DNA from: Octopus bimaculoides
Lineage: Eukaryota
NCBI RefSeq assembly: GCF_001194135.2
Contig: NC_068999.1
Span: 43,452,578-43,486,333, forward strand
Direction: 5' to 3'
Length of the DNA stretch: 33,756 nucleotides
The notes beneath the pieces are model-generated. The model was not told where the DNA came from, did no database searches, and saw only the letters and a program-made list of their open reading frames with translations. The translations under genes were made by a program, and so were the position numbers. This document shows positions 4,827 through 20,635 of this stretch, one piece after another (position 1 is the stretch's first letter; every line of letters starts with the position of its first letter).

Positions 4827-5254
4827 GTCTACTATTTCTTTTCTTTTTTTTACTTTTTTTTTTCTGCTATTCCTCTCTTTCATACTTTGACCCTATCCTG
4901 TGCACTTGTACCACTACTCTGCATGTCCACCTGTGCTTCGTCTGCACTTTTATAACCACTCCTGCTGCTNNNNNNNNNNNNNNNNNNNNNNNNNNNNNNN
5001 NNNNNNNNNNNNNNNNNNNNNNNNNNNNNNNNNNNNNNNNNNNNNNNNNNNNNNNNNNNNNNNNNNNNNNNNNNNNNNNNNNNNNNNACTGCTGCTCCTG
5101 CTGCTGTCATCTACTACTACTGCTGCTGCTACCGCTGCTGCCGCCAACACCACCACCACCACTGCCACCACCACCTCTGTTGTTGACCCTTCTTGTCTTC
5201 TGAAAAAAAAAACAAAACAAAAAAAAAAACTTTCCAAATGACCACCACCCACAG
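4827..5254 (+). promoter_or_regulatory. extended AG-exclusion zone with polypyrimidine tract and CUG/YGCY cluster upstream of E1 (candidate splicing regulatory element)
   Basis: No AG in the sequenced bases 4827-4969 and 5088-5252 (308 nt; a 118-nt N gap lies between). Pyrimidine tract about 4833-4881, about 12 YGCY in 5088-5166, TGCATG at 4920-4925, branch-point-like TTGAC with A at 5186. Confidence 0.6.
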
Positions 5255-5367
5255 TGCCGATGATTGCCAACACTAACCAGCCTGCATCGATGGCAAGTGC
5301 TGCTACTAGCACCACCTCACTTCCTACTAATGCTGCTAGTGTAAATTACTTTGATGAGAACAACCAG
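5255..5367 (+). CDS. mbl: muscleblind internal coding exon E1 (113 nt, phase 1 to phase 0), Ala/Thr/Ser-rich C-terminal-region exon
   Basis: Acceptor cccacAG at 5253-5254 is the first AG after an in-frame TGA at 5239-5241. Donor CAG|GTAGTA at 5368. Translation (x)TG CCG ATG...AAC CAG = VPMIANTNQPASMASAATSTTSLPTNAASVNYFDENNQ. It resembles the recalled human MBNL1 segment [32 protein letters not shown] in start, end and phases, and splices in frame to E2. Confidence 0.85.
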
Positions 5368-5693
5368 GTAGTAGTGCTCTAAAACTCTTCTTCATCATCC
5401 TTAGTGCTACACCTGCTTCTACTACTGCTCTTTGTTTTACTAGTGTTTTATTATTATTATTGTATTGCGTGTTTGCTTTCTTCATTTCTGCTTATCTTAC
5501 TGTTTAAGTATCTTTTGGTTTCGTTTCATTCGTGTCTTGAACTTTTCTTAATCTTAAGACAAATATGATTTGTCTTTTATTTCTTTATACATGGCCAAGA
5601 TATCTGCATCACATTTTTTTTCCTTTTGTCATATATCGAACTTCTTTTAACCATATACATATCAACATACATAATTATGTGTTCACCTATGCC

Positions 5694-5743
<50 letters not shown>

Positions 5744-5765
5744 CACACTTACATGCATACATACA

Positions 5766-5799
<34 letters not shown>

Positions 5800-6025
5800 C
5801 ATACATAAACAATGAAAAGCTGAAATTTTACACCGTTGTTATTTTAGCTTTTGCCTTACCACGTTTTCGTTTTTTTTTTTTTCTCAACTACAATTATTTT
5901 TTCCAATAATATTTAGTTGTGGCATAAAGCTGCTTTGCAAAACACAAAATTAACAACGGTCTAAAAATCTCAGTTTTTAAATTGTTATACACTCTGCATT
6001 ATGTATTCAGAATTTTCTCACATTT

Positions 6026-6042
6026 GTGTGTGTGTGTATGTG

Positions 6043-6074
<32 letters not shown>

Positions 6075-6456
6075 CATGCATATGTATGTATATATATGTA
6101 CATGTATATATATGTATATATATACATGTATATGTATGTATATATATGTACATGTATATGTATGTATATATATGTACATGTATATATATGTATATATATA
6201 CATGTATATATATGTATATATATACATGTATATATATGTATATATATACATGTATATATATGTATATATATACATGTATATGTATGTATGTATATATATG
6301 TACATGTATATATATATATGTACATGTATATATATATATGTACATGTATATATATATATATATATATGTACATGTATATATATATATGTACATGTATATA
6401 TATATATATGTACATGTATGTATATATATATATGTACATGTATATATATATATATA
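6026..6456. repeat. alternating purine-pyrimidine minisatellite of TACATGTA cores separated by (TA)n
   Basis: Directly visible. It explains the six overlapping YIYM/CIYI ORFs in the track. Confidence 0.9.
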
Positions 6457-8594
6457 TTATTTGAATTTGCTTCAACTTGAGTTTGATGCAGTTTAGATGT
6501 TCTGTCTTGTTTTGTTGTTTTTGTTCTGTTCTGTTTTTTCTGTCACTTGGAGCTCCTGTTTTGCAATAGAATCTAGTCGTATAATTAGCAGTTTTGTCTC
6601 AATTTTGCCAGTCCTCAAACTCGTCAATTTACACAAAATGAAAACATTCATTCATATCATTTATCTCTAGTTTGAATCCCTTTCGTCCTTGTTTTGTTTG
6701 TTTTGTTTTTTTTTTCTTCTTAAAGTTCCTCTTTTGGCTAATATATAATACAATCACCTTTGTTCTATTTGTTAATTAATCTTGTACAAACTCTGTTGGG
6801 ATGTTTATAACACCTGACAAGTATCATTAAGTAATTACGACATAATTTCACGAAATGGCTGAAAGCCACATTAGTTGATTGTATTATGCTATACTCAAGT
6901 ACATATTAAACTTTCCCAACCCAGTATTGAGTGCGCTTGTCTCTTATATATGTCAAACACATATCTGTTATATATTCTTGCATGTTTGTCATTTGGTTTT
7001 CAGTACCAATGTTTATTTTGGTCTGTGTGGTAGTGGCTGTCTTTTTGCATGTGATACCAGTTTGTGCGTATGAATGTGTTAAAATGGAGTTTGTCTCTCT
7101 GCATTGTGAAACAGTTCCATATTTCAGCTCAGGCTCTTTTTTATTTTACGTTTCTCTGATTTTTTTTCTTATTCACTCCACTGGTGATAAGGCTTACTAT
7201 ATTCTTGGAGTGGTTAATTTGTTTCGCCGTGGGTCTTTGGGTAATCAAAATGTATAACTGACGTAGTGGCCATCACCTCAGACACGCCAAGCGAGAAGCT
7301 CTCATCGTGCTGGATCTACAATCTACCTGCAATCAAGTTTTAACTTCCCCAGTACCTCTAAATAAGTATCGCAGCGTGGAACAAGTTTCTACCCTAAGCA
7401 AGAAGTGCGCTGTTACATTGGCAAAATGTTTTGTTAGCTTACGATGCTGAGTTCAACTCCTTCTAAGAGGATTTTTGTTTTCTAGTTCATTTTTTAAAAA
7501 AAGCCATACTGTAATTAGTGAGCGAGAGCATTGTTGGTTACAGGTTTCCAACAGGTCAATTACTAAGAGAAACTATGTGTATACTGATATATCAAGATTG
7601 TTGTTCCTCTTTTGATTGTTAGTTGCAACATTTCAGCTGTTGTATCCTCCAACCATCTTCCGATGTCTGTCATATTTGGTAACGTACATTGAGTTTCAAG
7701 TCAAATCTTTAATTCAAACCACTGAGATAAACTCATCTCCTTCCATTTGTCAGTGTTAGGGATATTTTCATATTAGTTTTACCTAAATTTGTGTTGCCTC
7801 TAGTTCGCTATTCTTCAACCAGAATATGTACAGATCCAGGGATTGAACTTACAGCCACTTAGTGAATTAATGTACTTATTTACTTGGTGTTTAATCAACT
7901 CCTATATTCACTGTACCATTGTGCCATAGATCAATTAAGTAACCTGCTTTAAACTTATTTGTTTATGATCTTAGGTTTTATGTTCTTTGTTAAATACAGG
8001 CTCTTATCTAGTGTTCGTCTCTCTGCTAGATCTACTGAGGAAGTTATCACAAACTTACATACCAATTCTTTCAACTTATGTACCAATTCTTTTATCTTTC
8101 AGTGTTGTTTTCTGTTGTCTTGACATGAGTTGCTGACTTTTGTTTTTCCCTCCTCAAAGGTTGAGCTCTGCCTTATTTTCTTAATCTTCTCATGGATTTT
8201 CAGCTTTATAATGTTTCTGTTGCCTTCTTTTTCATGGGCAGCTCACCTCACCTTCATATTTCTTGCCACAACTGCATGGGATGAAATACAAATTGTTGGT
8301 CATGATTTTTTTTTTTTTCTTCTGATTGGAGCTTTGCTCAAGAGAAATGTCCCCAAAGAGTAAACCAAAGTGTAAATCCCATTCTCAGTCTGTAACTTGC
8401 CAATATTTGGGTGTAAACCAAATAACTTTATTATTATTTAGTTAAATGTTTACTAAATTTATACATGGAATATAGTTGTAAGTACTATAAGTATTCAGGT
8501 ACATAGTGTTAAGAAAAATTACGGGGGGAGGGTGAACCTCTAAATGTGGTGGTGGTTATTATTTGGATACTAGAAGCATTTATCATTATTAAGA

Positions 8595-8830
8595 GCGGTT
8601 AAGGTGACAAGTTAGCAAAATTGTTAGCATGTCGGACAAAATGCTGAGCATTTCATCTGTTTTTGTTCTCAGTTCAAATTCTACCATGGTCGACTTTGCC
8701 TTTCATCCTATCAAGGTTGATGAAACCACATACCAGTTAAGTACTGGGGTCGATGTAATCAAATAGCCCCCCTGCCCATCTCATCCCAAAAGTTTCAGAC
8801 CTTAGTGCCTATAGGAGAAAAAACTCATTA
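8595..8830 (+). mobile_element. tRNA-derived SINE, family A
   Basis: B-box-like CAGTTCAAATTC followed by the core GGTCGACTTTGCCTTTCATCC...GTACTGGGGTCGATGTAATC, shared with the copies at 13728, 21325 and 27930. Confidence 0.75.
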
Positions 8831-8860
8831 AGGGTGGTGGATTAACAGAGATGTTAGCCA

Positions 8861-8903
<43 letters not shown>

Positions 8904-8905
<2 letters not shown>

Positions 8906-8977
8906 GGGTGTCCACAAAGTCTGGGTACATGGAGTAAATAAAATCATAACATAAACAATTAAATATAAGAAATAATA
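8904..8977. mobile_element. possible end of a Tc1/mariner-type MITE running into a gap
   Basis: CAGGGTGTCCACAAAGTC start immediately after a TA/CA tract. The other end is not visible (gap 8978-9329). Confidence 0.35.
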
Positions 8978-10380
8978 NNNNNNNNNNNNNNNNNNNNNNN
9001 NNNNNNNNNNNNNNNNNNNNNNNNNNNNNNNNNNNNNNNNNNNNNNNNNNNNNNNNNNNNNNNNNNNNNNNNNNNNNNNNNNNNNNNNNNNNNNNNNNNN
9101 NNNNNNNNNNNNNNNNNNNNNNNNNNNNNNNNNNNNNNNNNNNNNNNNNNNNNNNNNNNNNNNNNNNNNNNNNNNNNNNNNNNNNNNNNNNNNNNNNNNN
9201 NNNNNNNNNNNNNNNNNNNNNNNNNNNNNNNNNNNNNNNNNNNNNNNNNNNNNNNNNNNNNNNNNNNNNNNNNNNNNNNNNNNNNNNNNNNNNNNNNNNN
9301 NNNNNNNNNNNNNNNNNNNNNNNNNNNNNGTGTGTGTGTGTGTGTGTGTGTGTGTGGAGAGAGAGAGAATTTTAACTCTTTTTTTTGTTTTTTTTTTGTT
9401 TTTACTTGTGCTCTTCCACCCAGATTGATATATTCCACCCGTTCAACCACCCAAGAGTCCTTTCTGCCAACAAAATGTCTGACATGTTTTCTTTTTGTTT
9501 TCTCTCACATATTTTTTTTTACTTGGCTTCTCTGGTTTATCCTACCCCCCCCCCCGTCGCCATTCTAACTGCAGTGGCTTCTCTTTTTCCTTCTATTGTT
9601 ATTAGACTACATTTGAGCGAGGGGTAGAAGGCAGGGGGGAGAGAGACTGAGAGAGATGATGGATGGTGATGCTGATGAGATGTGGTGTGGGAATATGGTG
9701 GCTAAGCAGATGAGTGTATGGCAGAGAAGAACCTTGTGAGTGTGTGTGTGTGTGTAGTGTAGTGTCGTGGTGATAGTGNNNNNNNNNNNNNNNNNNNNNN
9801 NNNNNNNNNNNNNNNNNNNNNNNNNNNNNNNNNNNNNNNNNNNNNNNNNNNNNNNNNNNNNNNNNNNNNNNNNNNNNNNNNNNNNNNNNNNNNNNNNNNN
9901 NNNNNNNNNNNNNNNNNNNNNNNNNNNNNNNNNNNNNNNNNNNNNNNNNNNNNNNNNNNNNNNNNNNNNNNNNNNNNNNNNNNNNNNNNNNNNNNNNNNN
10001 NNNNNNNNNNNNNNNNNNNNNNNNNNNNNNNNNNNNNNNNNNNNNNNNNNNNNNNNNNNNNNNNNNNNNNNNNNNNNNNNNNNNNNNNNNNNNNNNNNNN
10101 NNNNNNNNNNNNNNNNNNNNNNNNNNNNNNNNNNNNNNNNNNNNNNNNNNNNNNNNNNNNNNNNNNNNNNNNNNNNNNNNNNNNNNNNNNNNNNNNNNNN
10201 NNNNNNNNNNNNNNAATGGATGAGGAGTGATTACGGGGGGGGGATGGGTAGGGGCATGTTTTTCCTTCTAGGGGGCAGCTCTCCATTTATTCAAGCCTGA
10301 CAGATAGATGGTTAAATAGATAGAGAGGGAGAGATGTAGATGGAGAGGGAGAGAGATAGATGGAGAAGGAGTGATAGATA

Positions 10381-10432
<52 letters not shown>

Positions 10433-11022
10433 TGAGAGAAAGAGATGCACTGGTAGGCAGACAATTGGAAAAGATGGTTGAATAGACAGATAAATAAATG
10501 TCTGGATGCACAGTTGTTTGTGACAAAGCAGATCTATATAACAAATGACTCAGTTTTGGTTGCAGCCTTTATATTCTTGTGGTCTTGCTGGACTACAATT
10601 TTCAAGGGTTTTTATCAATTATTCTGACCCTGGTCCTCACAGTCTAGTCTGGGTCCTCACAGTCTGCTGCTTGTTTCATTGATCTCTGTTTATTGAAGTG
10701 GCTAAGTTCACCTTCAGTTAGTCCCCCCCACACACACACACACACCGCACCATTTAAAAATAGATAAATAAATAAATAAATAAGCATTTCTTTTCTTTTT
10801 AAGGAGTAAATTAATCAATTGTCCAGTTGAACATCCCCCCCCACCACCACTTGGCCCTTGAGCGCCTTTTCAGAATTACATTTTGTAGAAAATATTCCGA
10901 TCAGGTCTCTCAGCTGGGAATGACTTTATTTTTTTGTCTTGGAGGCCTGAAAAGAATCATGATTTTGCTTTGTTTGACTGAGGCACACACACACACACAC
11001 ACACACACGCACATGTCAGCAG

Positions 11023-11170
11023 CATCGTCATTTAAATCTGCTTTCCATGCTGGCATGGGTTGGGCAGTTTGACAAGCTCCAACGCCAACCACTTTGCAGA
11101 GCATACTCTTCCTAACACCAACCACTTTATAGAGTGTAGTGAGTACTTTTTTGTGCCACGGGCACTAGTG
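11023..11170 (-). mobile_element. SINE family B, internally deleted copy
   Basis: CATCGTCATTTAAATCTGCTTTCCATGCTGGCATGGGTTGG...AACGCCAACCAC. Confidence 0.6.
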
Positions 11171-13474
11171 ATGTTGCTATATATACATATATATATATAT
11201 ATATTGACCGCTGACTGGACACTATTTAATTTTTTTTCTCCGTGTTTTTCTCCTTGTCTCCGTATTCTTTCTGTTGAAGAGCGTAGCTCAAAACGTTAAA
11301 GACTTTCCATATTCCCGAGCGTCATACTAATACATCCTTTTGTTGTTTACACCACCTGTCCTCATCTGTTGTTGTTTTTTTCGTACATTCTCCCATATAT
11401 AGAGTTGAAATTTACAGAAAAACAAAAGACAAAGACAGGTGTATTAGTTTAATGCTTGGGAAGGTGAGAAAGTCTTTTACGTTTCGAGCCTATGCTCTTC
11501 AACAGAAAGGAACATGAGGAAATAAACAGAGAATGAATGGAGGCATAATGTCGCTGTCACTAGTGATCACTCCAAACCCTGTGATGTTAACTGGATGTTT
11601 GATTTTTATCACTCTCAGGACATGTCTTCAGTTTTAAGTAAAAAATATTTATCAACCCACATTTATGGAAGAAGACACTTGCCTCACTGTCAGGTTGAAC
11701 CTACATCCATACCACGCAGTCAGGTTTGTGCATGTTGAAAAATAGTTCTAGCTTTCAGCATTTCTTCTCTTGAAAAAGTTCTCCGCATGTTTTTAATTAA
11801 GTTATCAATCACACTTAACTCATTAAAAGCAAACGAAACTTCGTACAACAAACATTCTAAAAAATAGGACATGAGAATGTGGATAAAATAAAGAAAGTTA
11901 CAACAAAATAACTCTTTCTCTAGTCATATCCTATGTTATTTCACAATGGTTCTATTTCTTTTTACGTTACCCGTCCCCCCACTTCCAATATCCGCACCTA
12001 CTCGCCCACACACTTTGCTTATTGCCATCCTCTAAGAAAAGAGGGGAAGATTATTTAAATCTGGCATTAGGTTTAGTATTTATACATTTTTTTTTGTATT
12101 AAAAATCTGTTTTTCATTCTACGTGTACGAAACGTTTCCTCCTTCACTTTGTGTTTATGCTCAGCCATGCATTTATTGTTTGGTGGGCAATTGTGCTACC
12201 AATTACACCAAAGAGGCTCTGCCAATTTCATTTGTCAAAAATTACTACTTGAATTTTTCTTCTTTTTCTTCTATCTCCAATTCTGTTTAACGTTCTACTT
12301 CTTAAACGATGCCATTACAATGCCATTCTTTCAGTGCTGTGTTAGTTTGGTAAAGTCTGGAGAATTGTTTGAGTTGGTATATGCCATCTTCTTCAGATTG
12401 AAGTTAAAGAATTCTGCTCTTTCTTGAAAAGATAATTGTGACTAGCTACACTTATATCTATGTGTTTATATTCAGATGTGCGTGTGTGTGTGTGTGAAAA
12501 TAGTCATTGGTATTAACCCTTAAGCATTCCGATTACTTTCAAATGTAATGTTTAATCATCTGCATTAAAAAAAAAAATTAACCATACACAACTTTGTAAG
12601 TTGAGATTTTTATGATGTGATTGCTTATTTTAAAAATGATATTGTTGGATAGGTGTAAAAGGTTGGATCTGGCTGGTGTGAACATAAACCAGATAGACTA
12701 TTTGGACCAGCTATAGCCATTTTAAACATTAAAAGGCTGAAGTATATGAAGAAACATTCAATATATTAGGTGCAAGGATGAGAAGGAGAAACCCAAATTT
12801 TGAGCTTTTCTGGCAACAACATGGCTTAATCCCACTGCATGGAACTTAGGCTAATTGTCTTGGGTTGACCATTATGAGTGGAATTTGGTAAATGGAATTT
12901 GTGTGGTAACATTTTGTGTATGCAAATATATCCCTTGTTCTTGCGATAGTTCTTTCCATGCCAGCATGGATTGCATGAAGATGTTATTGGGATATTCATT
13001 TTTTTACCACTGGATGCTCTTCCCAACATTAACTCTTACCTGTTTTTAAAGTAAGGGGTATCTTGTTCCACTCATCCTTGAAATTACAAAGCCAGGAGAA
13101 ATGACAATGATGCCACTGCTTGTGGCCCAGCAATAAAGTACCATGTCATGGGACTGAACCTGAAATGATGTAGTTGGAAAGTAACACTCACACATGTGTG
13201 CGTGTGTGTGTGTGAATAGGCAGAAACATGCATAACTAAGTAGGTAGTTTTTTTTTCTGTTATTGTCAAAAGGTATAACATTTACCATAATATAAAAAAT
13301 TTCTCTATAGAAAATGTCATAACATTTAGTGAGTGTTATGCAACCACTCATGAAACATGACTCACGCAACGAGGAAATAAAATATTAATATTAGACAAAG
13401 CAGAAAACTGGTGCAGCATAATATGAATACACCAGTTTGAGATCAATACTCAGATTGCAAATGATGGTTTTAAT

Positions 13475-13705
13475 CAGGACTGTGGAGTCAGTCAGTGAAA
13501 CTATACTGACTCTGACTCCAACTCACGATATCTTTATTCTTTAATATGAACCAGTTATAACCTATAGGCCTACTCAAAGTACAAGTGTATGCATATGCTT
13601 TATGGGGTATGTAGACCACTTGATTACATAAAGAGGAGTTGGAGTCGGAGGTGCCAATAGTAGAGGAGTCAGAGTCGAAGTTTTTGTTTCAACTCCACAG
13701 CCCTG
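13475..13705. mobile_element. non-autonomous DNA transposon (MITE), hAT-like, 231 bp
   Basis: TIRs CAGGACTGTGGAGTC (13475-13489) and AACTCCACAGCCCTG (13691-13705), 13/15 complementary. Flanks GTTTTAAT (13467-13474) and GTTTTAAA (13706-13713) form an 8-bp TSD with one mismatch. Subterminal GACTCC/GGAGTC repeats are inverted. Confidence 0.75.
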
Positions 13706-13727
13706 GTTTTAAAACTGGTTTCAAATT

Positions 13728-13920
13728 TTGGCACAAGGCCAGCAATTTGGAGGGTGAGTGTATGTTGATTACATCGACCCCAGTGCTCAACTGGTACTTA
13801 TTTTATCAATTCTAAAAGGATGGAAGGCAAAGTCTACCATGGCAGAACTTGATTGCAGAACAAAATGCCACTAAACATTTTGCCCAGCATGGTAACGGTT
13901 CTGCCAACTCTCACCGCCTT
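13728..13920 (-). mobile_element. tRNA-derived SINE, family A
   Basis: Reverse complement of the family A core (GATTACATCGACCCCAGT...AAAGGATGGAAGGCAAAGTCTACC). Confidence 0.75.
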
Positions 13921-13936
13921 ATTGATGGTTTTAATA

Positions 13937-13968
13937 TTAATTAATTAATTAATTAATTAATTAATTAA
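13937..13968. repeat. (TTAA)8 palindromic microsatellite
   Basis: Perfect TTAA array adjacent to the head of the minus-strand family A SINE. Confidence 0.9.
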
Positions 13969-14296
13969 TTACAAATGTAGCTGGCCTTGTTTCAGACTTT
14001 GACACCAATAACAAATGTCACTTGAGTAAGGTGTCTTTCAGAAGATTTAGGAAATGAATAAATGGCAAATACAGAGAGTGAGGGAGAGAGAAAAGAAAAA
14101 TGTGGAGAAAACGAGAAAGAAATATACTATAAGATATTGGATCCTATGATGACACACAAGTTTGATAAGAAGAACGCAGGATCTCCTGCACTCGTGTGTG
14201 TGTGTGGTTGTGTATAGATAAATGAATAGAAACTGAAAGAAGCCTGCCAGGTAATGTAGGTGTGTGTATATGTAAAGTTATTTAGTATTTATAAGA

Positions 14297-14590
14297 CATT
14301 CGAGCGAGATCGTTGCCAGTACCACTGGACTGGCTCCTGTGCAGGTGGCACGTAAAATACACCATTTCGAGCGTGGCCATTGCCAGTACCCACCTGACTG
14401 GCCTTCGTGCCGGGTGGCACGTAAAAGCACCCACTACACTCTCTGAGTGGTTGGCGTTAGGAAGGGCATCCAGCTGTAGAAACTCTGCCAGATCAGATTG
14501 GAGCCTGGTGTAGCCATCTGGCTTACCAGTCCTCAGCCAAATCGTCCAACCCATGCTAGCATGGAAAGCGGACGTTAAACAATAATGATG
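14297..14590 (+). mobile_element. SINE family B with GGAAGGGCATCCAGC core and (GAT)n-type tail
   Basis: GGCGTTAGGAAGGGCATCCAGCTGTAGAAAC...AGCATGGAAAGCGGACGTTAAACAATAATGATG, near-identical to the inverted copy at 17928-18142. The core recalls the Nin-domain SINE motif (from memory). Confidence 0.8.
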
Positions 14591-16315
14591 GTTATAAACA
14601 TGCACAGTTTGTTTATTAAACTATATGTAACATTTTTTAGGTTGATGGGGTGGGGGTGGGGGCTAAATATTCCTTGTCTTGGTTTTTCTTATATCACTCG
14701 ATGTTCTTTTTTTCTTTTTATGGTTTTTGTCTTTTATCGTCATTCTTGAAGATAACTGTTACCAATGTGCATATGTGCATGTATGTATCACGTATGGCAG
14801 CATGCACACATTAGCACAATCAAACCTCCAGTGGCATCCACATGACATACTAATACCTTCAGACTCACACACATACATACGCACTATTTGTATTCTCGTT
14901 TGTGGTTCCATATTCCGTATTTGTGCGTGCGTGTGTGAATTTTTTTCTTTTGATATATCTATCCATTTTCCCCAAAATGTTGCTATCCCATTATTAACAC
15001 ATCACTATTTGTATATCTACCTCTGACATAGCAATGTGTTGCTATCTATTTTTTAATGCATTGGCTTTTTTCTTCGTTTTTTTTTTTTTCTTTTTGCTAT
15101 GAAGTCATTGCTAAATCGTTGCTGACATGTTGCCATTTAGTTTTGATTTCATTGTCCAACATTACTTTGTGTCATCCTATTGTGTGTTGCTATTTAATTG
15201 TCAACACCTTTGGTTGCTGTCCACTTGACACTTGTCTATTAACCTGTTAGCAACACATTACTAATGCTGAGCCTACTGTCTTTGCTGAATGCTTATCTGT
15301 TATTCAAATTTTGATGTTTAGTTACCTCCATCTTTTTAGTTAACATGTTTAACTAATTTGGTTAAAACCTCATTGCTACCAACTCTTCAGATCAATCAGT
15401 CTTCATGTAATAACATAGTCAAGTTAATTACATTTTAATTGAGTTTGCCTCTTCATTACTAACAAGTTCCTGTTTAATTAGCAACATCTACATGAAGAGG
15501 GCACTCAGTTGTCTAGGTTCTATCAGCGATGTTATATAGAACATATCTTGTCTGGTCTATACTCTATTACCAAATTGGCTGCTTTGTTGCTAATGGGTTT
15601 CTGTTTAATTAGCAACATTTGGGGATTAATGGTGGGGGTGGCTGATGAATGTGAAGGCATTTGGTTGTTACACTTCTGTTGTCATAGATACTTCATGTAG
15701 CATTTTTATCTTTTTAAAATTCTTCTCCGAACATTTTCTTTGCTGTTAACATGTGGCTACTTCATTTTGATCATGATACTTCACTAGCAACATCACTGCC
15801 TCATAGCAACCACATATTGCTGTTGCAGTTGCTATATATATTTATTTGATAGATTGATTGTATTTTTGTTTGTTTATAAATATTTTGGTGAGGTTGTATA
15901 TGTTTGCAATTTCTTAAAATGAATTTTCTTTTTGTTTTATACACACACACACACCACATCCATGAGAAATCAAAATTAAATGGGTACGCATGTATTTTTT
16001 ATGTGTGTGTGTGTGTGTGTGTATGGGATGCTGTGTGCGTATTAGCATATTCTTGATTAGTTCATTCTGTAATTAGCAAAATTAACAAGATTCCTTAATA
16101 TAGGAATTTCTTATATACATGTCCTCACCCATCTCTTTCTCTCTCTCTCTTACATATTTGTGCATTTCTCTGCCTCTCTCCCTTTCAAACTGTTGTTCTT
16201 TCTTTCTGTCTCCTCCTCTCTTTTTGCTCTCTTTCTCTCTCTCTCTCTCTCTCTCAAATGAAATAATGTTCCAACTCAAAGAATACATTTCTTATGTTTA
16301 TCCTTTCTCTTCCAG

Positions 16316-16350
16316 TTGCTGGACACCCTCCCACTGTGCCGCGATTTTAA
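16316..16350 (+). CDS. mbl: alternative reading frame of E2 (phase-1 entry): xAGHPPTVPRF*
   Basis: TT GCT GGA CAC CCT CCC ACT GTG CCG CGA TTT TAA read from the sequence. Resembles the recalled Drosophila MblC C-terminus FTGHPPGVPRF*. Would be used if E1 is skipped from a phase-1 upstream donor, which is outside the window or not identified. Confidence 0.6.
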
Positions 16351-16400
16351 GTCTAGCCAGTGTAACAGGCCACAATGTAAGTTTGTGCATCTAATGGAGG
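16316..16400 (+). CDS. mbl: muscleblind coding exon E2 (85 nt, phase 0 to phase 1), CCCH zinc finger C-X7-C-X4-C-X3-H
   Basis: Strong acceptor tttatcctttctcttccAG (16314-16315) and consensus donor G|GTAAGT (16401). Translation LLDTLPLCRDFKSSQCNRPQCKFVHLME+G, in frame with E1 and E3. Confidence 0.93.
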
Positions 16401-16590
16401 GTAAGTTTGTTTTCACTCATCACTTTCTATTTATCCATCTACAACTCTATTCATCTTTCTCTCTACATTATTTTTGATAATACAGTTCTATATTTAAGAG
16501 ATGAATTATGTACATTATTTACATTTGGTAGACGGAAACTGAAAGAAGCCCATCGTATATATGTATACATATGTGTGTGTTTGTCCTCCT

Positions 16591-16790
16591 AGCATTGCTT
16601 GACAACCGATGCTGGTGTGTTTATGTCCCTGTCACTTAGCGGTTTGGCAAAAAGAGACCGATAGAATAAGTACTAGGCTTACAAAGAATAAGTCCCGGGG
16701 TCGATTTGCTCGACTAAAGGCGGTGCTCCAGTATGGCTGCAGTCAAATGACTGAAACAAGTAAAAGAGTAAAAAGAGTATTTGACGAATA
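16591..16790 (+). mobile_element. SINE family C 3' portion
   Basis: CATTGCTTGACAACCGATGCTGGTGTGTTTATG...GAATAAGTCCCGGGGTCGATTTGCTCGACT...AAGAGTAAAAAGAGTA short-repeat tail. Shares the GGGGTCGAT box with family A. Confidence 0.6.
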
Positions 16791-16849
16791 TTTGTCCTCA
16801 TTTTGTTTGTTAATTATTTTTGATGACAATTATCATTGCACACTATGGC

Positions 16850-17162
16850 ACTTTGTCAGTTACAACAACAAGGGTTCCAGTTGCGTGTAACCCTTAATGT
16901 AGTTCTCGGGGAGATTCAGCATGACACAGTGTGTAACAAGGCTGGCCCCTTTGAAATACAGGTACCACAGAAACAGGAAGAAAGACTGAGAGAAAGTTTT
17001 GGTGAAAGAGTGCAGCAGGGTTCGCCACCATCCCCTGCCGGAGCCTCGTGGAGCTTTAGGTGTTTTCACTCAATAGACACTCACAGCGCCCAGTCTGGGA
17101 ATCGAAACCGCGATCCTATGACTGCGAGTCTGCTGCCCTAACCACTGGGCCATTGCACCTCC
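16850..17162 (-). mobile_element. tRNA-headed SINE with well preserved pol III A and B boxes
   Basis: Reverse strand begins GGAGGTGCAATGGCCCAGTGGTTAGGGCAGCAGACTCGCAGTCATAGGATCGCGGTTTCGATTCCCAGACTGGGCG (A box TGGCCCAGTGG, B box GGTTTCGATTCC), followed by a non-tRNA body. Confidence 0.75.
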
Positions 17163-17214
17163 TCTATAATTGCAGAAGACCAGAAATGTATGGGACAGGG
17201 AACCTTCAGTGGGA

Positions 17215-17410
17215 TTTGAACTCAGAATGTAAGAACAAATAAAAATACTGCAACGCATTTTGTTCACTGCTCTTTTGTAAATTCCTCATAAACAATTGCA
17301 AAATTTAACTTGAATCTGGAGATGTTTCTGTTGAACTTAAAACATAAAGACAGACGAAATACCGCTAAGCATTTCGCCCGGCGTGCTAACATTTCTGCCA
17401 GCTCTGTTAC
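17215..17410 (-). mobile_element. two adjacent 5' head fragments of family A SINE
   Basis: Reverse complement of GAGCTGGCAGAAATGTTAGCACGCCGGGCGAAATGCTTAGCGGTATTTCGTC, plus a second GAGTTCAAATCCC head. Confidence 0.6.
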
Positions 17411-17925
17411 TGCTGCTGTTCTGGCCTCATTCCTGCATCTCCGCCCATCTCATCTCCTTTCCTTGTCAATGCTCCTTTACCATGTGGTTTTAAGGCACCC
17501 TGCTGCTATTTCCCCACTGAGGCTTACATTTTAGTGCCACCAGACAGTCACTTTCTCAATCTTATCTGAGTTCCAGCCTCTGCATCTTATTTCGTCACTG
17601 ACCTTGTTGATGCCCATTGTTGTCTCCACTGTGTCATTTTGGACTCTGTGCAGACCGATTAATCGGAAGTGTTCCAGCCATAACCATCCAGTCTTGATAG
17701 TTTCTAGAACTATATTATCGTCTTTTAGGATGACAGGATATGTTTTAGGGATAGATTTGACTGCTTTTTCCTCTCCAGCTTCTTCAACCATCTAGCAATT
17801 CTTTCTGCTGTTGCATGGATTTAGACTCTGTGCGAACACGTGATCAGTATTGCTCAACCTATAATAGCACACGTAGTTCTCAGTGACAGATGTCCAGCAG
17901 CATGATAACCGCCAAATCTCCTGTC
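17410..17925 (-). mobile_element. decayed LINE (RTE-like) reverse transcriptase remnant
   Basis: Reverse-strand peptides YYRLSNTDHVFA (like GFR.GRSTTDHIF), KVSDEIRCRGW and CLKTTW*RSIDKE (like GRPKTTWRR.VEKE). Contains stops and large deletions. Confidence 0.45.
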
Positions 17926-17927
17926 AA

Positions 17928-18142
17928 CATCATCATCATCGTTTAACGTCTGCTTTCCATGCTAGCATGGGTTGGACAATTTGACTGAGGACTGATGAAA
18001 CCGGATGGCAACACCAGCCTCCAATCTGATTTGGCAGAGTTTCTACAGCTGGATGCCCTTCCTAACGCCAACCACTCAAAGAGTGTAGTGGGTGCTTTTA
18101 CGTGTCACCCGCATGAAGGCCAGTCAGGCGGTACTGTCAACG
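17928..18142 (-). mobile_element. SINE family B, inverted copy
   Basis: CATCATCATCATCGTTTAACGTCTGCTTTCCATGCTAGCATGGGTTGGAC...GCTGGATGCCCTTCCTAACGCC is the reverse complement of about 14378-14590. Confidence 0.8.
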
Positions 18143-18647
18143 ATATATAGAAATCTCAGTGACTATTCAGGCACTGGTGTCACTATATATAAAAACTTAC
18201 TTGGAAATATATGTGCGTGTGTGTACATATATATATACACACGCACGCACATTGTGTATGTGTGTGCGTATCAGACTCTTGGTTAATAACACTAATATTT
18301 TTGACATCTAAGCAAACTTTTGCAGTTAAAAGATCTTTTTTTAAATATTTACATCTTCATAGCATTTTTCTCTGATATCCAGTTGTGATGTCAACTCCCT
18401 TGTTTCTAGAAGTACACAAGATGCCTGAACAGGATTTGAACTTTTCACTTGTGTTTCTAAATTAACTGCAATAACACATATTTCCTTGGCCACAGACACA
18501 CGTATCTCAATAATTATTTATGGTTAAGCTTAATCAATGATTATTTATATTTAAAAGTTTGTAGATAAAAAATAAAATACGATGAATTATTTTTTTGGCA
18601 TTTGTCCATCTTCAAATACTTCTTAGCAACATCCAGCATATTAAGAT

Positions 18648-18700
18648 CATCATCATTGTTTTCATGTCTGCTTTTCCATGCTGGCATGAGTTGGATGAGA
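18648..18700 (-). mobile_element. family B 3' tail fragment
   Basis: CATCATCATTGTTTTCATGTCTGCTTTTCCATGCTGGCATGAGTTGGATG. Confidence 0.55.
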
Positions 18701-18809
18701 TTTGTTGCAATGTATCTAAAGGAAAATTTTTTAGGTTTTCTTGAAATACTATTGTGGATCTCCAATTTACTATTTTATTGCATTGACCCCACAATTCTTA
18801 TATGGGCCC

Positions 18810-19122
18810 CAGCTGAGAACCACCAGTGTAAACTGAAAGAAGCCTGTTGTGCATACATGCATGTGTGTATGCATGAGCGCTTGTCTCTTTGCTTTGACAA
18901 TGCATGACAGTTGTAAGTCAGAAGATCACACAAATAGTGAGTGTTCTTCATTTCCTGTGCACCACGACATGTCTGGTCATGAGGAAATATTACCTTACTT
19001 GGAAACAAGGTGAGGGTTAGCAACAGGAAGGTCATCTGGTTGTGGAAAACTTGCCGCAGTAAATTCCATCCATTCTAGGTGAGCATGGAAAAGCAGACAT
19101 TAAAATGACAATGATGATGATG
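18810..19122 (+). mobile_element. family B-related SINE ending about 75 nt before the E3 acceptor
   Basis: CAACAGGAAGGTCATCTGGTTGTGGAAAAC core variant and tail AGCATGGAAAAGCAGACATTAAAATGACAATGATGATGATG. Confidence 0.6.
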
Positions 19123-19195
19123 ATAATTCTTCATCGTTTTTATTACCTTTATTATCATTAATTTTTTTTTTAATTTTTTTTTTTACAACTTTCAG

Positions 19196-19210
19196 ATTAT
19201 GTTGAAGTGA
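19196..19210 (+). CDS. mbl: alternative reading frame of E3 (phase-0 entry after E2 skipping): IMLK*
   Basis: ATT ATG TTG AAG TGA. An E1-E3 junction gives ...ENNQ|IMLK*, resembling recalled human MBNL2 ...TANQ|IILK*. Confidence 0.55.
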   Translation: MMLK

Positions 19211-19332
19211 CGGAGGGCAAGGTGACTGTGTGCCGTGATTCAGTTAAGGGGAAGTGCCGAAGACACCTGTGCAAATACTATCACATCCCTGTTATATTAT
19301 CAGCCCTTGCTGCTCCCAACTTGACCACTTGA
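19196..19332 (+). CDS. mbl: muscleblind probable terminal coding exon E3, CCCH zinc finger C-X7-C-X4-C-X3-H plus short tail
   Basis: T-rich acceptor ttttttttacaactttcAG (19194-19195). G|AT TAT... = DYVEVTEGKVTVCRDSVKGKCRRHLCKYYHIPVILSALAAPNLTT, TGA at 19330-19332. The inter-finger linker VEVTEGKVTVC matches the MBNL-family pattern (VEVQNGRVTAC / TVTVC..CKYFH). Confidence 0.93.
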
Positions 19333-19440
19333 GAAGCAGCAGCAGCAGCAGCAGCAGCCGACCTACTACTACTACTACTACTACAGCAACTTTCTACTAC
19401 TTCTATTACAACTACATCTGCAACCACTATTACAACTGCA

Positions 19441-19483
<43 letters not shown>

Positions 19484-19558
19484 TTCTTACTGTTATTACT
19501 TCAGTGGACAGTGTTGTTGTTGTTGTTGTCGTCTTTGTTTTATTGCATCACTACAAGA

Positions 19559-19589
<31 letters not shown>

Positions 19590-19647
19590 TATTATTTTTA
19601 GTGGGGAGCCTACACTGATCATTCTAGACTCTCTTACTTTCTCATTC

Positions 19648-19679
<32 letters not shown>

Positions 19680-19896
19680 AGTATCTATCGATTTATCTAT
19701 CTACATGTCTGTCTATGTGAAAGGGGGATTAAGAAAAGAAAAAAAAAAGAAAAAAAGAAATAGGCTCAATCAATGTAGCAGTACTAATAGCTGCAGTAGT
19801 AGCAGTAATAGAAGTTAGTAGTAGTAGTTGTAGTAGTAGTAGTAGTAGTAGTAGTAGTACTAATAATAATAGTCTTACATGACTGACTGGGTGGGG
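19333..19896 (+). repeat. proximal 3'UTR compound microsatellite array: (CAG)7, (CTA/ACT)n, (GTT)n, (ATT)n, (TCTA)n, (TAG/AGT)n
   Basis: Visible directly after the stop codon. (CAG)7 at 19337-19357, ACT run about 19441-19482, TAG runs about 19816-19858. Confidence 0.85.
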
Positions 19897-20635
19897 NNNN
19901 NNNNNNNNNNNNNNNNNNNNNNNNNNNNNNNNNNNNNNNNNNNNNNNNNNNNNNNNNNNNNNNNNNNNNNNNNNNNNNNNNNNNNNNNNNNNNNNNNNNN
20001 NNNNNNNNNNNNNNNNNNNNNNNNNNNNNNNNNNNNNNNNNNNNNNNNNNNNNNNNNNNNNNNNNNNNNNNNNNNNNNNNNNNNNNNNNNNNNNNNNNNN
20101 NNNNNNNNNNNNNNNNNNNNNNNNNNNNNNNNNNNNNNNNNNNNNNNNNNNNNNNNNNNNNNNNNNNNNNNNNNNNNNNNTATATATATATATATATATG
20201 ACCTCCAACACCCCAAACAAAACTTGAAAAAAAAAAACAGGAGAAAAAAATAAATATTAAAGCCCTGACATTTTTTTTCTTATTCAATCCACCATGATGA
20301 TGATGATGATGATAATGATGGTGGTGGTAATGATGATGATGATGATGATGATTATGATGAAGGAGGTGTTGGTGATATTGATGATGATGATGATGATGGT
20401 AGTGCTGGTGGGTTGTATACTTATTTCTTATGCTATTTGAATTTATACACACAAACATACATACATGCACACCCCTGACTGTCAAGTTCAATTACTCTCT
20501 CTCTCTCTCTCCCACACACACATACACACACACGTGCATTTGCACACAAATAAGATATACAAAAGTGCACCCAGTTATGCACATGCACACAGGCCTGTAA
20601 AGATTTTTATGTTTGGTTGCGTGTTTGTGTGCAAC

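Follow-up and report, generated by a model that had tools for sequence, protein, structure and literature searches.

A muscleblind frame switch in octopus: one dual-coding exon for a short tail and a third finger pair

How can the 3' end of a single octopus gene supply different C-termini from the same few exons? The question arises from a 33,756-nt stretch of Octopus bimaculoides DNA (the window), where, judged from its sequence, the region studied is the 3'-terminal part of the muscleblind (mbl/MBNL) splicing-regulator gene. A preliminary description had proposed a frame-switch cassette of three exons, E1 to E3, and we find that their coordinates, lengths and phases are as claimed, with AG/GT splice sites at all three. 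The cassette exon E1 (5255-5367, + strand, as are all exons and introns below) is 113 nt long (3n+2), runs from phase 1 to phase 0 between the splice sites cacag|TG and CAG|gtagta, and encodes (x)PMIANTNQPASMASAATSTTSLPTNAASVNYFDENNQ while serving as the frame toggle. It is followed by an intron of 10,948 nt (5368-16315) containing two assembly gaps and one arm of an inverted repeat, and then by the dual-coding exon E2 (16316-16400, 85 nt; ttccag|TT ... AGG|gtaagt), which in phase 0 after E1 encodes LLDTLPLCRDFKSSQCNRPQCKFVHLME, the first finger of an extra pair. The E2-E3 intron (16401-19195, 2,795 nt) holds the other arm of the inverted repeat and, at about 17250-17500, a second patch rich in YGCY. 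Read in phase 1, the coding part of E3 (19196-19332; tttcag|AT ... TGA) encodes the second finger and the tail DYVEVTEGKVTVCRDSVKGKCRRHLCKYYHIPVILSALAAPNLTT, with the stop TGA at 19330-19332; read in phase 0, it gives IMLK before a TGA at 19208-19210. The 3'UTR begins with a segment (19333-19896, + strand) carrying (CAG)n and (ACT)n microsatellites and is alignable to a cephalopod transcript, L001, as far as about 19415-19483; the first AATAAA lies at 20249, beyond the next gap.

With one base carried over from a phase-1 upstream exon, the four peptides of the preliminary description reproduce exactly. E1+E2+E3 reads ...NYFDENNQ-LLDTLPLCRDF...CKFVHLME-DYVEV...CKYYHIPVILSALAAPNLTT and contains two CCCH fingers, E1+E3 reads ...NNQIMLK, the upstream exon joined to E2 gives xAGHPPTVPRF*, and the upstream exon joined to E3 gives xYVEVTEGKVTVCRD...*, with one finger. 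As the length of E1 is not a multiple of 3, its inclusion or skipping changes the downstream frame and the stop codon. We propose that E1 comes after the ...VPVYQP..YQQALAMQLQQ.. region and a pair of cephalopod mini-exons, all of which are encoded before the window starts, and that its inclusion would set E2+E3 in the frame of a third tandem pair of MBNL-type CCCH fingers (TZF3) at the C-terminus, ending ...NLTT*. On skipping, the phase-1 upstream exon would join E2 and read the same nucleotides one base out of register, producing from the overlap segment (16316-16350) the conserved 11-residue tail (F)AGHPPTVPRF; its stop TAA (16348-16350) lies 33 nt into E2, and the remainder of E2 together with E3 would become 3'UTR. 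E2 is read in two frames through E1 inclusion or skipping and is therefore a dual-coding exon, with E1 as the toggle.

Both main products are already annotated in RefSeq for O. bimaculoides, each as a computational model and one of the two partial. Residues 228-338 of XP_052830666.1, the finger-pair form, equal E1+E2+E3 of the window at 100% identity (residues 228-265 for E1), and the model also carries the N-terminal finger pair and the KRPx...VPVYQP...YQQA region. XP_014777742.1 joins that finger pair and region to E2 with E1 skipped, and ends ...FAGHPPTVPRF*; this model and one from O. vulgaris end ...PYFTFAGHPPTVPRF. The upstream exon lies outside the window. Its phase of 1, which the preliminary description required, is confirmed twice: by L001, which reads ...TTTTACT T|TT GCT GGA..., and by the last 10 residues of XP_014777742.1, which map to 16318-16347 at 100%. 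L001 has a full mbl ORF plus E2 and E3; its upstream exon, E2 and E3 are contiguous, and the finger ORF is intact yet out of frame. Five more cephalopod-like transcript ORFs share the E1-skipped end (six of the six found). E1-included transcripts come from a bivalve-like (L004) and a mosquito-like (L006) source, and E1-included isoforms are annotated in tick, sea spider, beetle, mosquito, Lepidoptera and Mytilus. One mosquito-like lineage contains both classes, P0066 with E1 skipped versus P0048 and P0029 with E1 included, on near-identical upstream sequence.

The idea of a self-contained three-exon cassette needs one amendment: the three muscleblind exons are real and the frame arithmetic is right, but a further segment of 45 residues lies between the ...PYFT exon and E1 in XP_052830666.1, encoded outside the window. 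By arithmetic this segment is 135 nt and preserves the frame. Because it is the immediate upstream partner of E1 in that model, the real choice may be a block made of the 45-residue segment and E1, not E1 by itself. The O. sinensis models X11 and X12 end within this segment, which gives a fifth C-terminal end.

Conservation extends well beyond cephalopods. The E1 motif NAxSVxYxDxxGQ is kept in bivalve, tick, sea spider, beetle and mosquito, and the position of the E2-E3 intron is kept across taxa, with fragment models beginning at LLDTLP or DYVEV. Ends of the (A/T)GHPPxxPRF type were found across protostomes, and the extra finger pair is annotated in corals, echinoderms, one hemichordate and tunicates as well. 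To look at E2 itself, we aligned its nucleotides from eight transcripts, molluscs and arthropods among them. Both frames are kept in all 8 taxa, as LLDTLPxCRDF and (A/T)GHPPxxPRF*; the first 35 nt are 0.89 identical versus 0.64 in the rest of the exon, and third positions of the finger frame are 0.82 identical in the overlap versus 0.38-0.40 elsewhere in E2 (permutation p<1e-4). Between two cephalopods the overlap has no synonymous changes. E2 thus has the properties of a dual-coding exon, namely conservation of both frames and suppressed synonymous variation where they overlap. We judge the frame switch to be genuine and ancient.

The preliminary description had predicted that E1+E2+E3 adds an extra tandem finger pair, and the pair proves to be of genuine MBNL type. 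Both fingers are CX7CX4CX3H, within the MBNL-type spacing CX7CX4-6CX3H, and the pair matches Pfam PF22628 at 56 bits (cut-off 27). Against the MBNL1 ZnF3/4 structures 3D2Q and 5U6L the extra pair scores E of about 2e-13, with Cys and His residues aligned in both alignments, and matches to MBNL1 ZnF3/4 and ZnF1/2 structures range from E 1e-13 to 1e-11. Finger spacing and similarity mark the octopus gene as a muscleblind/MBNL, for which binding to YGCY RNA and a role in splicing are predicted. Over codons 13-64, the finger frames of octopus and L001 differ by 15 synonymous and 6 nonsynonymous changes (omega 0.074, p=1.2e-6); this frame is under strong purifying selection between the two cephalopods.

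A different view of E2+E3 is that they form a small gene of their own encoding a 74-aa two-finger protein, as in the O. bimaculoides UniProt entry A0A0L8GUY8, a 100% match that also serves to identify the locus, and in stand-alone models from spiders and ticks. We regard this as extremely unlikely. Stand-alone models do occur in several annotations, but E2 has no in-frame ATG of its own and opens with a consensus 3' splice site, E2+E3 are present in full-length mbl transcripts and RefSeq models, and at their N-terminal ends the spider and tick models consist of the upstream mbl exon translated out of frame (P0005 and P0006 compared with frame 1 of L002 and P0022). The switch within mbl corrects these annotations: the octopus 74-aa "C3H1 protein", for which the 2015 annotation split E2+E3 off, the stand-alone finger genes in spiders and ticks, and a spider "toxin", in fact an mbl ORF read out of frame.

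It could also be that the E1-skipped mRNA is an unproductive by-product targeted to nonsense-mediated decay and that only the finger-pair isoform is functional. Its stop codon does lie in the penultimate exon, but just 50 nt ahead of the last (E2/E3) junction, at or below the usual 50-55-nt rule. The amino-acid sequence of the tail, GHPPxxPRF, is moreover retained from molluscs through to insects and ticks, and in each cephalopod-like sample seen it is the E1-skipped transcript that was assembled. We therefore give the decay reading very little credence and treat the short tail as a product of the switch.

Do all four predicted ends occur in octopus? The finger-pair and AGHPPTVPRF ends are RefSeq models, but the E1+E3 end and the orphan finger are without mollusc support. 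Three of the four do resemble known termini, as had been suggested: the finger pair and AGHPPTVPRF in O. bimaculoides itself, and the QIMLK type in tunicates. If E1 and E2 were skipped independently, all four combinations would be made in octopus, with graded RNA-binding valency that includes the orphan finger. The frame arithmetic permits all four junctions, three tunicates have annotated ends of the E2-skipped ...IMLK/ILLK type, and a 212-nt inverted repeat (91%) brackets E2 in its introns and could loop it out. However, splice sites are stronger at E2 than at either other exon, the E1+E3 end occurs only in tunicates among the matches examined, and the short IMLK-type read-out, an automatic consequence of keeping DYVEV in the finger frame, varies freely elsewhere (IMWT*, IL*, VIK*, IMLKLRTAK*). 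The junction of the upstream exon with E3 is absent from the word-indexed search matches and from the best 150 of 993 exhaustive HMMER matches; the proposed orphan finger finds no transcript or model in any taxon among the matches examined. Two candidate orphan-finger matches were rejected as read-through crustacean gene models. Independent skipping is accordingly improbable, and we retain a two-way switch at E1.

The E1-E2 intron is interrupted by N runs at 8978-9329 and 9779-10214. The first starts 3,611 nt after E1, the second ends 6,102 nt before E2, and neither touches an exon or a reading frame. Three of their four edges adjoin microsatellite or low-complexity sequence: A/T-rich sequence to the left of 8978, and (GT)n to the right of 9329 and to the left of 9779. 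The placement and orientation that the assembly gives to the 449-nt island between them (9330-9778) are provisional. No coding exon is expected in these gaps, because E1, E2 and E3 are directly contiguous in XP_052830666.1 and in the bivalve-like and mosquito-like transcripts. A further gap (4970-5087) adjoins the segment upstream of E1 and has a CTGCT repeat on both its sides.

What might control the choice of E1? The 3' end of the preceding intron (5088-5254, + strand) consists of a CUG/GCU/ACU-rich triplet tract, then an A-rich stretch and a weak polypyrimidine tract. The pyrimidine fraction at -25..-4 is 0.64 for E1, 0.86 for E2 and 0.77 for E3, and E1 is presumably the regulated step, since its 3' splice site is the weakest of the three. 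Mbl-type binding motifs had been described around E1, and the YGCY cluster is real: the 167 readable nt upstream contain 12 YGCY (8 of them UGCU), or 72/kb versus 9.8/kb window-wide, none of the 1,134 other 167-nt windows reaches 12, and E1 itself contains six. Mbl may repress E1 through this CUG/YGCY-rich tract just upstream of and within the exon, as MBNL does on e8, in which case abundant Mbl would lower the share of the finger-pair isoform. For this regulatory step alone, we see an even chance that the cluster is a neutral microsatellite and that E1 choice is made by other factors or tissue-specific splicing regulators. The tract is a compound triplet microsatellite, (CTG)n/(ACT)n/(GCT)n/(ACC)n, adjoining a gap; similar triplet repeats follow E3 and occur throughout the window, the genome is full of them, and the second YGCY-rich patch sits in an unrelated intron position. 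On the other hand, the tract lies no more than 170 nt ahead of the 3' splice site as well as in the exon. These are positions at which MBNL binding represses exons, and the corresponding mammalian exon is MBNL-repressed. Because the cluster is a triplet microsatellite beside a gap, we go only as far as to infer Mbl feedback on E1.

MBNL proteins play a central part in myotonic dystrophy, and how active they are depends on the number and spacing of their finger pairs. At this octopus locus, a single exon of 113 nt determines whether the protein ends in a short conserved tail or in a third finger pair, with one exon used in two frames, and the sequences suggest that the same switch may operate in most non-vertebrate animals. 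The exons, the phases, both products as annotated octopus proteins, the two transcript classes in other taxa, the conservation of both frames and the purifying selection acting on the finger frame come directly from this analysis. Overall, we consider it very probable that E1 toggles between the short tail and the third finger pair via the dual-coding E2, with E1 as a putative counterpart of vertebrate e8 and Mbl feedback as its proposed control. More tentatively, and with clear reservations, an e8-type switch might be ancestral to metazoans and have first toggled a third finger pair, with E2 dual-coding since at least the protostome ancestor and the pair going back to the common ancestor of cnidarians and bilaterians; the vertebrate lineage would have retained the switch and lost the fingers, and octopus Mbl would drive E1 skipping via the CUG tract as a valency-tuning feedback. 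The result links an autoregulated vertebrate exon to an older function and offers a simple, testable system for the role of the third finger pair. It brings limited novelty in practice, since RefSeq already has both main isoforms for O. bimaculoides and the logic of the switch is known in mammals. Neither the literature searched nor the RefSeq models state that E2 serves both ends in different frames, and the Mbl literature searched makes no mention of a third finger pair or of an exon common to two frames; reviews give invertebrate Mbl one finger pair, at most two.

Tunicate Mbl proteins end ...QIMLK or ...QILLK, an E1+E3-type end (Ciona XP_018671534.1 and XP_078489564.1, Styela XP_039250198.1, Phallusia CAB3263669.1), while in sister isoforms ...NGQSQ is followed by the finger pair. 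The octopus TGA (from V-T) cannot be the stop used in Ciona, because the Ciona finger frame reads E-I-K. In Drosophila, the isoform MblF (mbl transcript RF) carries a second tandem finger motif that is poorly conserved (Irion 2012, PMC3315501). This additional pair resembles vertebrate ZnF3/4 much less closely (32% identity) than the canonical second pair does, and it may be a counterpart of the octopus E2/E3 pair. A single exon encodes the canonical second pair, whereas the octopus extra pair is split by a conserved intron, and the Drosophila MblC-type tail is ...PVSCEYPQ..., not GHPPGVPRF. Vertebrate exon e8 of MBNL1/MBNL2 (mouse Mbnl2 'e9') is, like E1, a cassette near the gene's 3' end, after the KRPA...YQQA region; E1 matches it in length class (3n+2) and position, and presumably also resembles it in sequence (VPM...SAATTS..S.P...NQ). 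From this we infer that E1 is the counterpart of e8. MBNL exerts negative feedback on e8, whose inclusion moves the reading frame to a different C-terminus and changes the stop codon used in the terminal exon (PMC13044900, Table 1), and an eel model has the alternative-frame tail ...NICRSSD*. In vertebrates both outcomes of the switch are short tails that lack fingers (for Mbnl2, one with a PEST region and one without), whereas the octopus switch sets an 11-residue tail against a whole extra finger pair over two downstream exons.

The frame switch in octopus muscleblind (mbl) is real, and the core arithmetic of the preliminary description is correct. The window is AT-rich animal DNA laden with microsatellites and interrupted by nine assembly gaps. 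Scanned in six frames, it yields only two genuine CCCH fingers, both on the + strand (16337-16390 and 19231-19284). These lie in E2 (16316-16400, + strand; 85 nt, AG|TT...AGG|GTAAGT) and in the coding part of E3 (+ strand, starting at 19196 and closing with the TGA at 19330-19332), downstream of the cassette exon E1 (5255-5367, + strand; 113 nt, AG|TG...CAG|GTAGTA). The positions and lengths claimed for the three exons match the splice sites and translation exactly and, when one base is carried over (phase 1), each of the four C-terminal peptides predicted from them is reproduced letter for letter. Phase 1 at the end of the upstream exon is borne out by the cephalopod mbl transcript L001, because its junction (...TTTTACT T|TT GCT GGA CAC CCT...) splits the codon T|TT ahead of GCT GGA CAC CCT. 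An Rfam scan of the window and a Pfam search of eight of its intronic ORFs both returned zero matches.

Two of the four predicted products are already annotated at this locus. The C-terminal part of XP_052830666.1 (338 aa, partial) is E1+E2+E3, with residues 228-338 matching the window at 100%; this protein, which was hidden inside the 74-aa cluster, overturns the idea that E1 is never used in cephalopods. The other product, XP_014777742.1, ends like the O. vulgaris model in ...YSSTKLNEPYFT-FAGHPPTVPRF, and the last ten residues of its tail are a 100% match to 16318-16347, a reading of E2 shifted by one base. Similarly, L001, a Logan transcript 1,231 nt long whose sample is cephalopod-like, carries a complete Mbl ORF terminating in FAGHPPSVPRF, with the finger ORF intact, out of frame and 3' of the Mbl stop as 3'UTR, and five more transcript ORFs share this type of tail. 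The proposed three-exon cassette stands as regards E1, E2 and E3, but it is larger than that, because XP_052830666.1 has 45 extra residues (CVTSNLEY...SSTQSPT), encoded outside the window, between the upstream exon that ends ...PYFT and E1. By arithmetic this segment is 135 nt and therefore frame-preserving. O. sinensis isoforms X11/X12 (P0259/P0034) stop just after ...QQPSSTQS, a fifth C-terminus, and this stop falls inside the 45-residue segment that XP_052830666.1 (P0260; ...SSTQSPT|VPMIAN) reads through. Searching the window 5' of E1 (blastn/tblastn) with the cephalopod transcript, octopus RefSeq proteins and the O. sinensis X12 tail gave no match to the upstream exon; the upstream exons and the extra segment are located outside the window or within its gaps. 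Also outside the window, just before the switch, a 14-residue segment (YSSTKLNEIQPYFT / YSSTKLNE(IQ)PYFT) occurs twice in tandem in cephalopod Mbl, the copies having diverged; this duplication is present in L001 (839-926) and in P0020, P0023, P0033 and P0034 and was not seen in other molluscs or arthropods.

The extra finger pair is of muscleblind type. It matches Pfam PF22628 and the solved MBNL1 ZnF3/4 and ZnF1/2 structures (E 1e-13 to 1e-11), with its Cys and His aligned to those of MBNL1 in the two printed alignments (3D2Q, 5U6L), and the O. bimaculoides fragment model A0A0L8GUY8 in UniProt (74 aa, “C3H1-type domain”) is E2+E3 at 100%. Its identification with the canonical second Mbl pair is ruled out, since the canonical pair (EVCREFQRG...TVCMD...) is present as well, both in XP_014777742.1 and in several arthropod, bivalve, coral, echinoderm, hemichordate and tunicate proteins. 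We refer to pairs of the E2/E3 type (LLDTLPxCRDF...DYVEVxxGKVTVCRD...CKYYH) as TZF3. They sit at the C-terminal end of Mbl proteins and are annotated from corals to tunicates; we saw none in the vertebrate sequences that we looked at. P0084 from the euglenid Eutreptiella gymnastica and P0094 from the green alga Mesostigma viride rank with the highest-scoring hits to the octopus pair (E 1e-45 to 1e-34), and each shows four to six stretches that match the fingers. They are either genuine multi-finger relatives from beyond the animals or contaminants.

Both isoform classes recur across taxa. The E1-included arrangement (...NAxSVxYxDxxGQ|LLDTLP...) is found in the transcripts L004 (bivalve-like) and L006 (mosquito-like) and in annotated isoforms from tick, sea spider, beetle, mosquito, Lepidoptera, Mytilus and Pinctada. 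The E1-skipped tail, (A/T)GHPPxxPRF before the stop, occurs in transcripts from several lophotrochozoan-like and arthropod-like samples and is annotated in Dendroctonus isoform X5, a Rhipicephalus protein and a cockroach model, and one mosquito-like lineage has both classes (P0066, skipped, versus P0048/P0029, included). Cockroach, mosquito and beetle tails read (F/I)TGHPPGVPRF. Drosophila MblC, considered as the E1-skipped equivalent, qualifies only partly; Drosophila tails read ...PVSCEYPQ.... In every E1-skipped transcript examined, the finger ORF is downstream and out of frame. In stand-alone “finger genes” of spiders and ticks (P0003, P0004, P0006, P0080) the N-terminus is an out-of-frame reading of the upstream mbl exon, as it is in P0005 (UniProt A0A4Q8K339), a Liphistius venom-gland “toxin” named U64-Liphistoxin-Lsp1a_1. 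Such N-termini suggest ORF-calling artefacts on E1-skipped mRNAs, with the finger frame taken as the ORF, and we propose that the spider and tick models and the U64-liphistoxin entry are likely mis-annotations. Could the E1-skipped mRNA itself be a by-product targeted for decay? Its stop is only 50 nt from the last junction, its tail is conserved and E1-skipped transcripts are abundant, all of which argue against this.

The preliminary description went further and read the cassette as fully combinatorial, with four alternative ends including an orphan finger from joining the upstream exon to E3. This reading is unsupported: the orphan finger has no precedent among the word-indexed search matches and the best 150 of 993 hits from an exhaustive HMMER scan of 1.84 billion representatives, and the E1+E3 end, for which there is no mollusc evidence, was found only in tunicates. 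Two candidate orphan-finger precedents, P0139 and P0146, are read-through crustacean gene models with both fingers present. The proposed resemblance to a known terminus holds for ...IMLK (E1+E3), given that ...QIMLK ends annotated proteins of Ciona (XP_018671534.1, XP_078489564.1) and Phallusia (CAB3263669.1), with ...QILLK in Styela (XP_039250198.1); sister isoforms in the same tunicate species read on into TZF3. Elsewhere this read-out varies (IMWT, IL, VIK or IMLKLRTAK before the stop), and the short E1+E3 end is largely a by-product of the conserved DYVEV codons.

Judged by its pattern of conservation, E2 is an anciently conserved dual-coding exon. Using an ungapped alignment of eight taxa, across which both E2 peptides are conserved, we compared the 35-nt overlap with the other 50 nt and found mean pairwise identities of 0.89 and 0.64, respectively. 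Third positions of the finger frame (E2+E3 as read after E1) are at 0.82 in the overlap versus 0.38-0.40 elsewhere in E2 (permutation p<1e-4). Between octopus and L001 there are zero synonymous changes in the overlap, and finger codons 13-64 differ by 15 synonymous and 6 nonsynonymous changes (dS 0.69, dN 0.05, omega 0.074; synonymous excess p=1.2e-6). This excess and the low omega indicate that the finger frame is translated and under selection in cephalopods, even though assembled transcripts mostly skip E1. We also considered +1 ribosomal frameshifting at a conserved CGA-UUU-UAA-G as a route from the E1-skipped mRNA to the fingers and rejected it; the product would be without the first Cys of finger 1, and the conservation needs no frameshifting because dual coding accounts for it.

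The 3' splice site of E1 is the weakest of the three (pyrimidine fraction 0.64, with an A-rich run before it), and E2 (0.86; donor GTAAGT) and E3 (0.77) look constitutive from their splice-site sequences. Mbl-type binding motifs around E1 are, as claimed, present in the sequence: the 167 readable nt upstream contain 12 YGCY (8 UGCU), a count matched by no other 167-nt stretch of the window, and E1 itself contains 6 more, although the upstream tract is a compound CTG/ACT/GCT/ACC microsatellite beside a gap, and the genome abounds in repeats of this kind. MBNL represses inclusion when bound upstream of, or within, an exon, and the frame-shifting mammalian exon e8 is under MBNL negative feedback (PMC13044900). 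Mbl feedback on octopus E1, proposed as a means of tuning RNA-binding valency, is thus a reasonable extrapolation, and we put its chances at about even.

The gap nearest E1 (4970-5087) lies 167 nt 5' of it inside a CTG-type repeat; CTGCT-type repeat flanks both sides, and hence the CUG-rich tract is readable only in part. Most gaps in the window are at or beside microsatellites or low-complexity sequence (edges 9330, 9740-9778, 19840-19896 and 20181; stretch 4958-5180), and the octopus mbl 3'UTR opens (19333-19500) with (CAG)8 followed by (ACT)n. The 10.9-kb E1-E2 intron holds two N runs, 8978-9329 and 9779-10214 (3.6 kb from E1, 6.1 kb from E2), with three of their four edges adjoining such sequence, no reading frame crossing them and a 449-nt island, placed as assembled, between them. 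Orthologous transcripts and the octopus RefSeq model join E1, E2 and E3 directly, so these gaps are not expected to hide a coding exon. A 212-nt dispersed repeat forms an inverted pair, 91% complementary, at 14380-14590 (+) and 17931-18140 (-), with its arms about 1.7 kb 5' and 1.5 kb 3' of E2, and there is a third, partial copy at 11037-11159 (-). The arms could pair in the pre-mRNA and loop out E2, which would favour E2 skipping or back-splicing, or form long double-stranded RNA; alternatively, a common repeat may have come to flank E2 in this way by chance. A second YGCY-rich patch in the E2-E3 intron (17250-17500; up to 10 per 167 nt, GC 0.45), whose ORFs have no Pfam match, is possibly a repeat element.

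The isoforms are already in databases, this species included, and the switch is undescribed in the literature searched, where we found no description of the switch itself, of dual-frame use of E2 or of a third finger pair. Neither a comparative study from 2016 nor a review from 2026, both of which give invertebrate Mbl one pair or occasionally two, mentions a third pair or shared-frame exon use. Irion (2012, PMC3315501) reported, in Drosophila, a transcript (RF, “MblF”) whose second pair is poorly conserved; this pair is a candidate counterpart of TZF3. What is most interesting is evolutionary, namely an anciently conserved dual-coding exon and a third pair annotated from corals to tunicates. 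The octopus switch belongs to a known kind, of which it is a putative orthologous member. Like e8 of vertebrate MBNL1 and MBNL2, E1 is a cassette exon of length 3n+2 close to the 3' end that re-frames the next exon, but the outcome differs because the octopus switch gates a whole finger pair.
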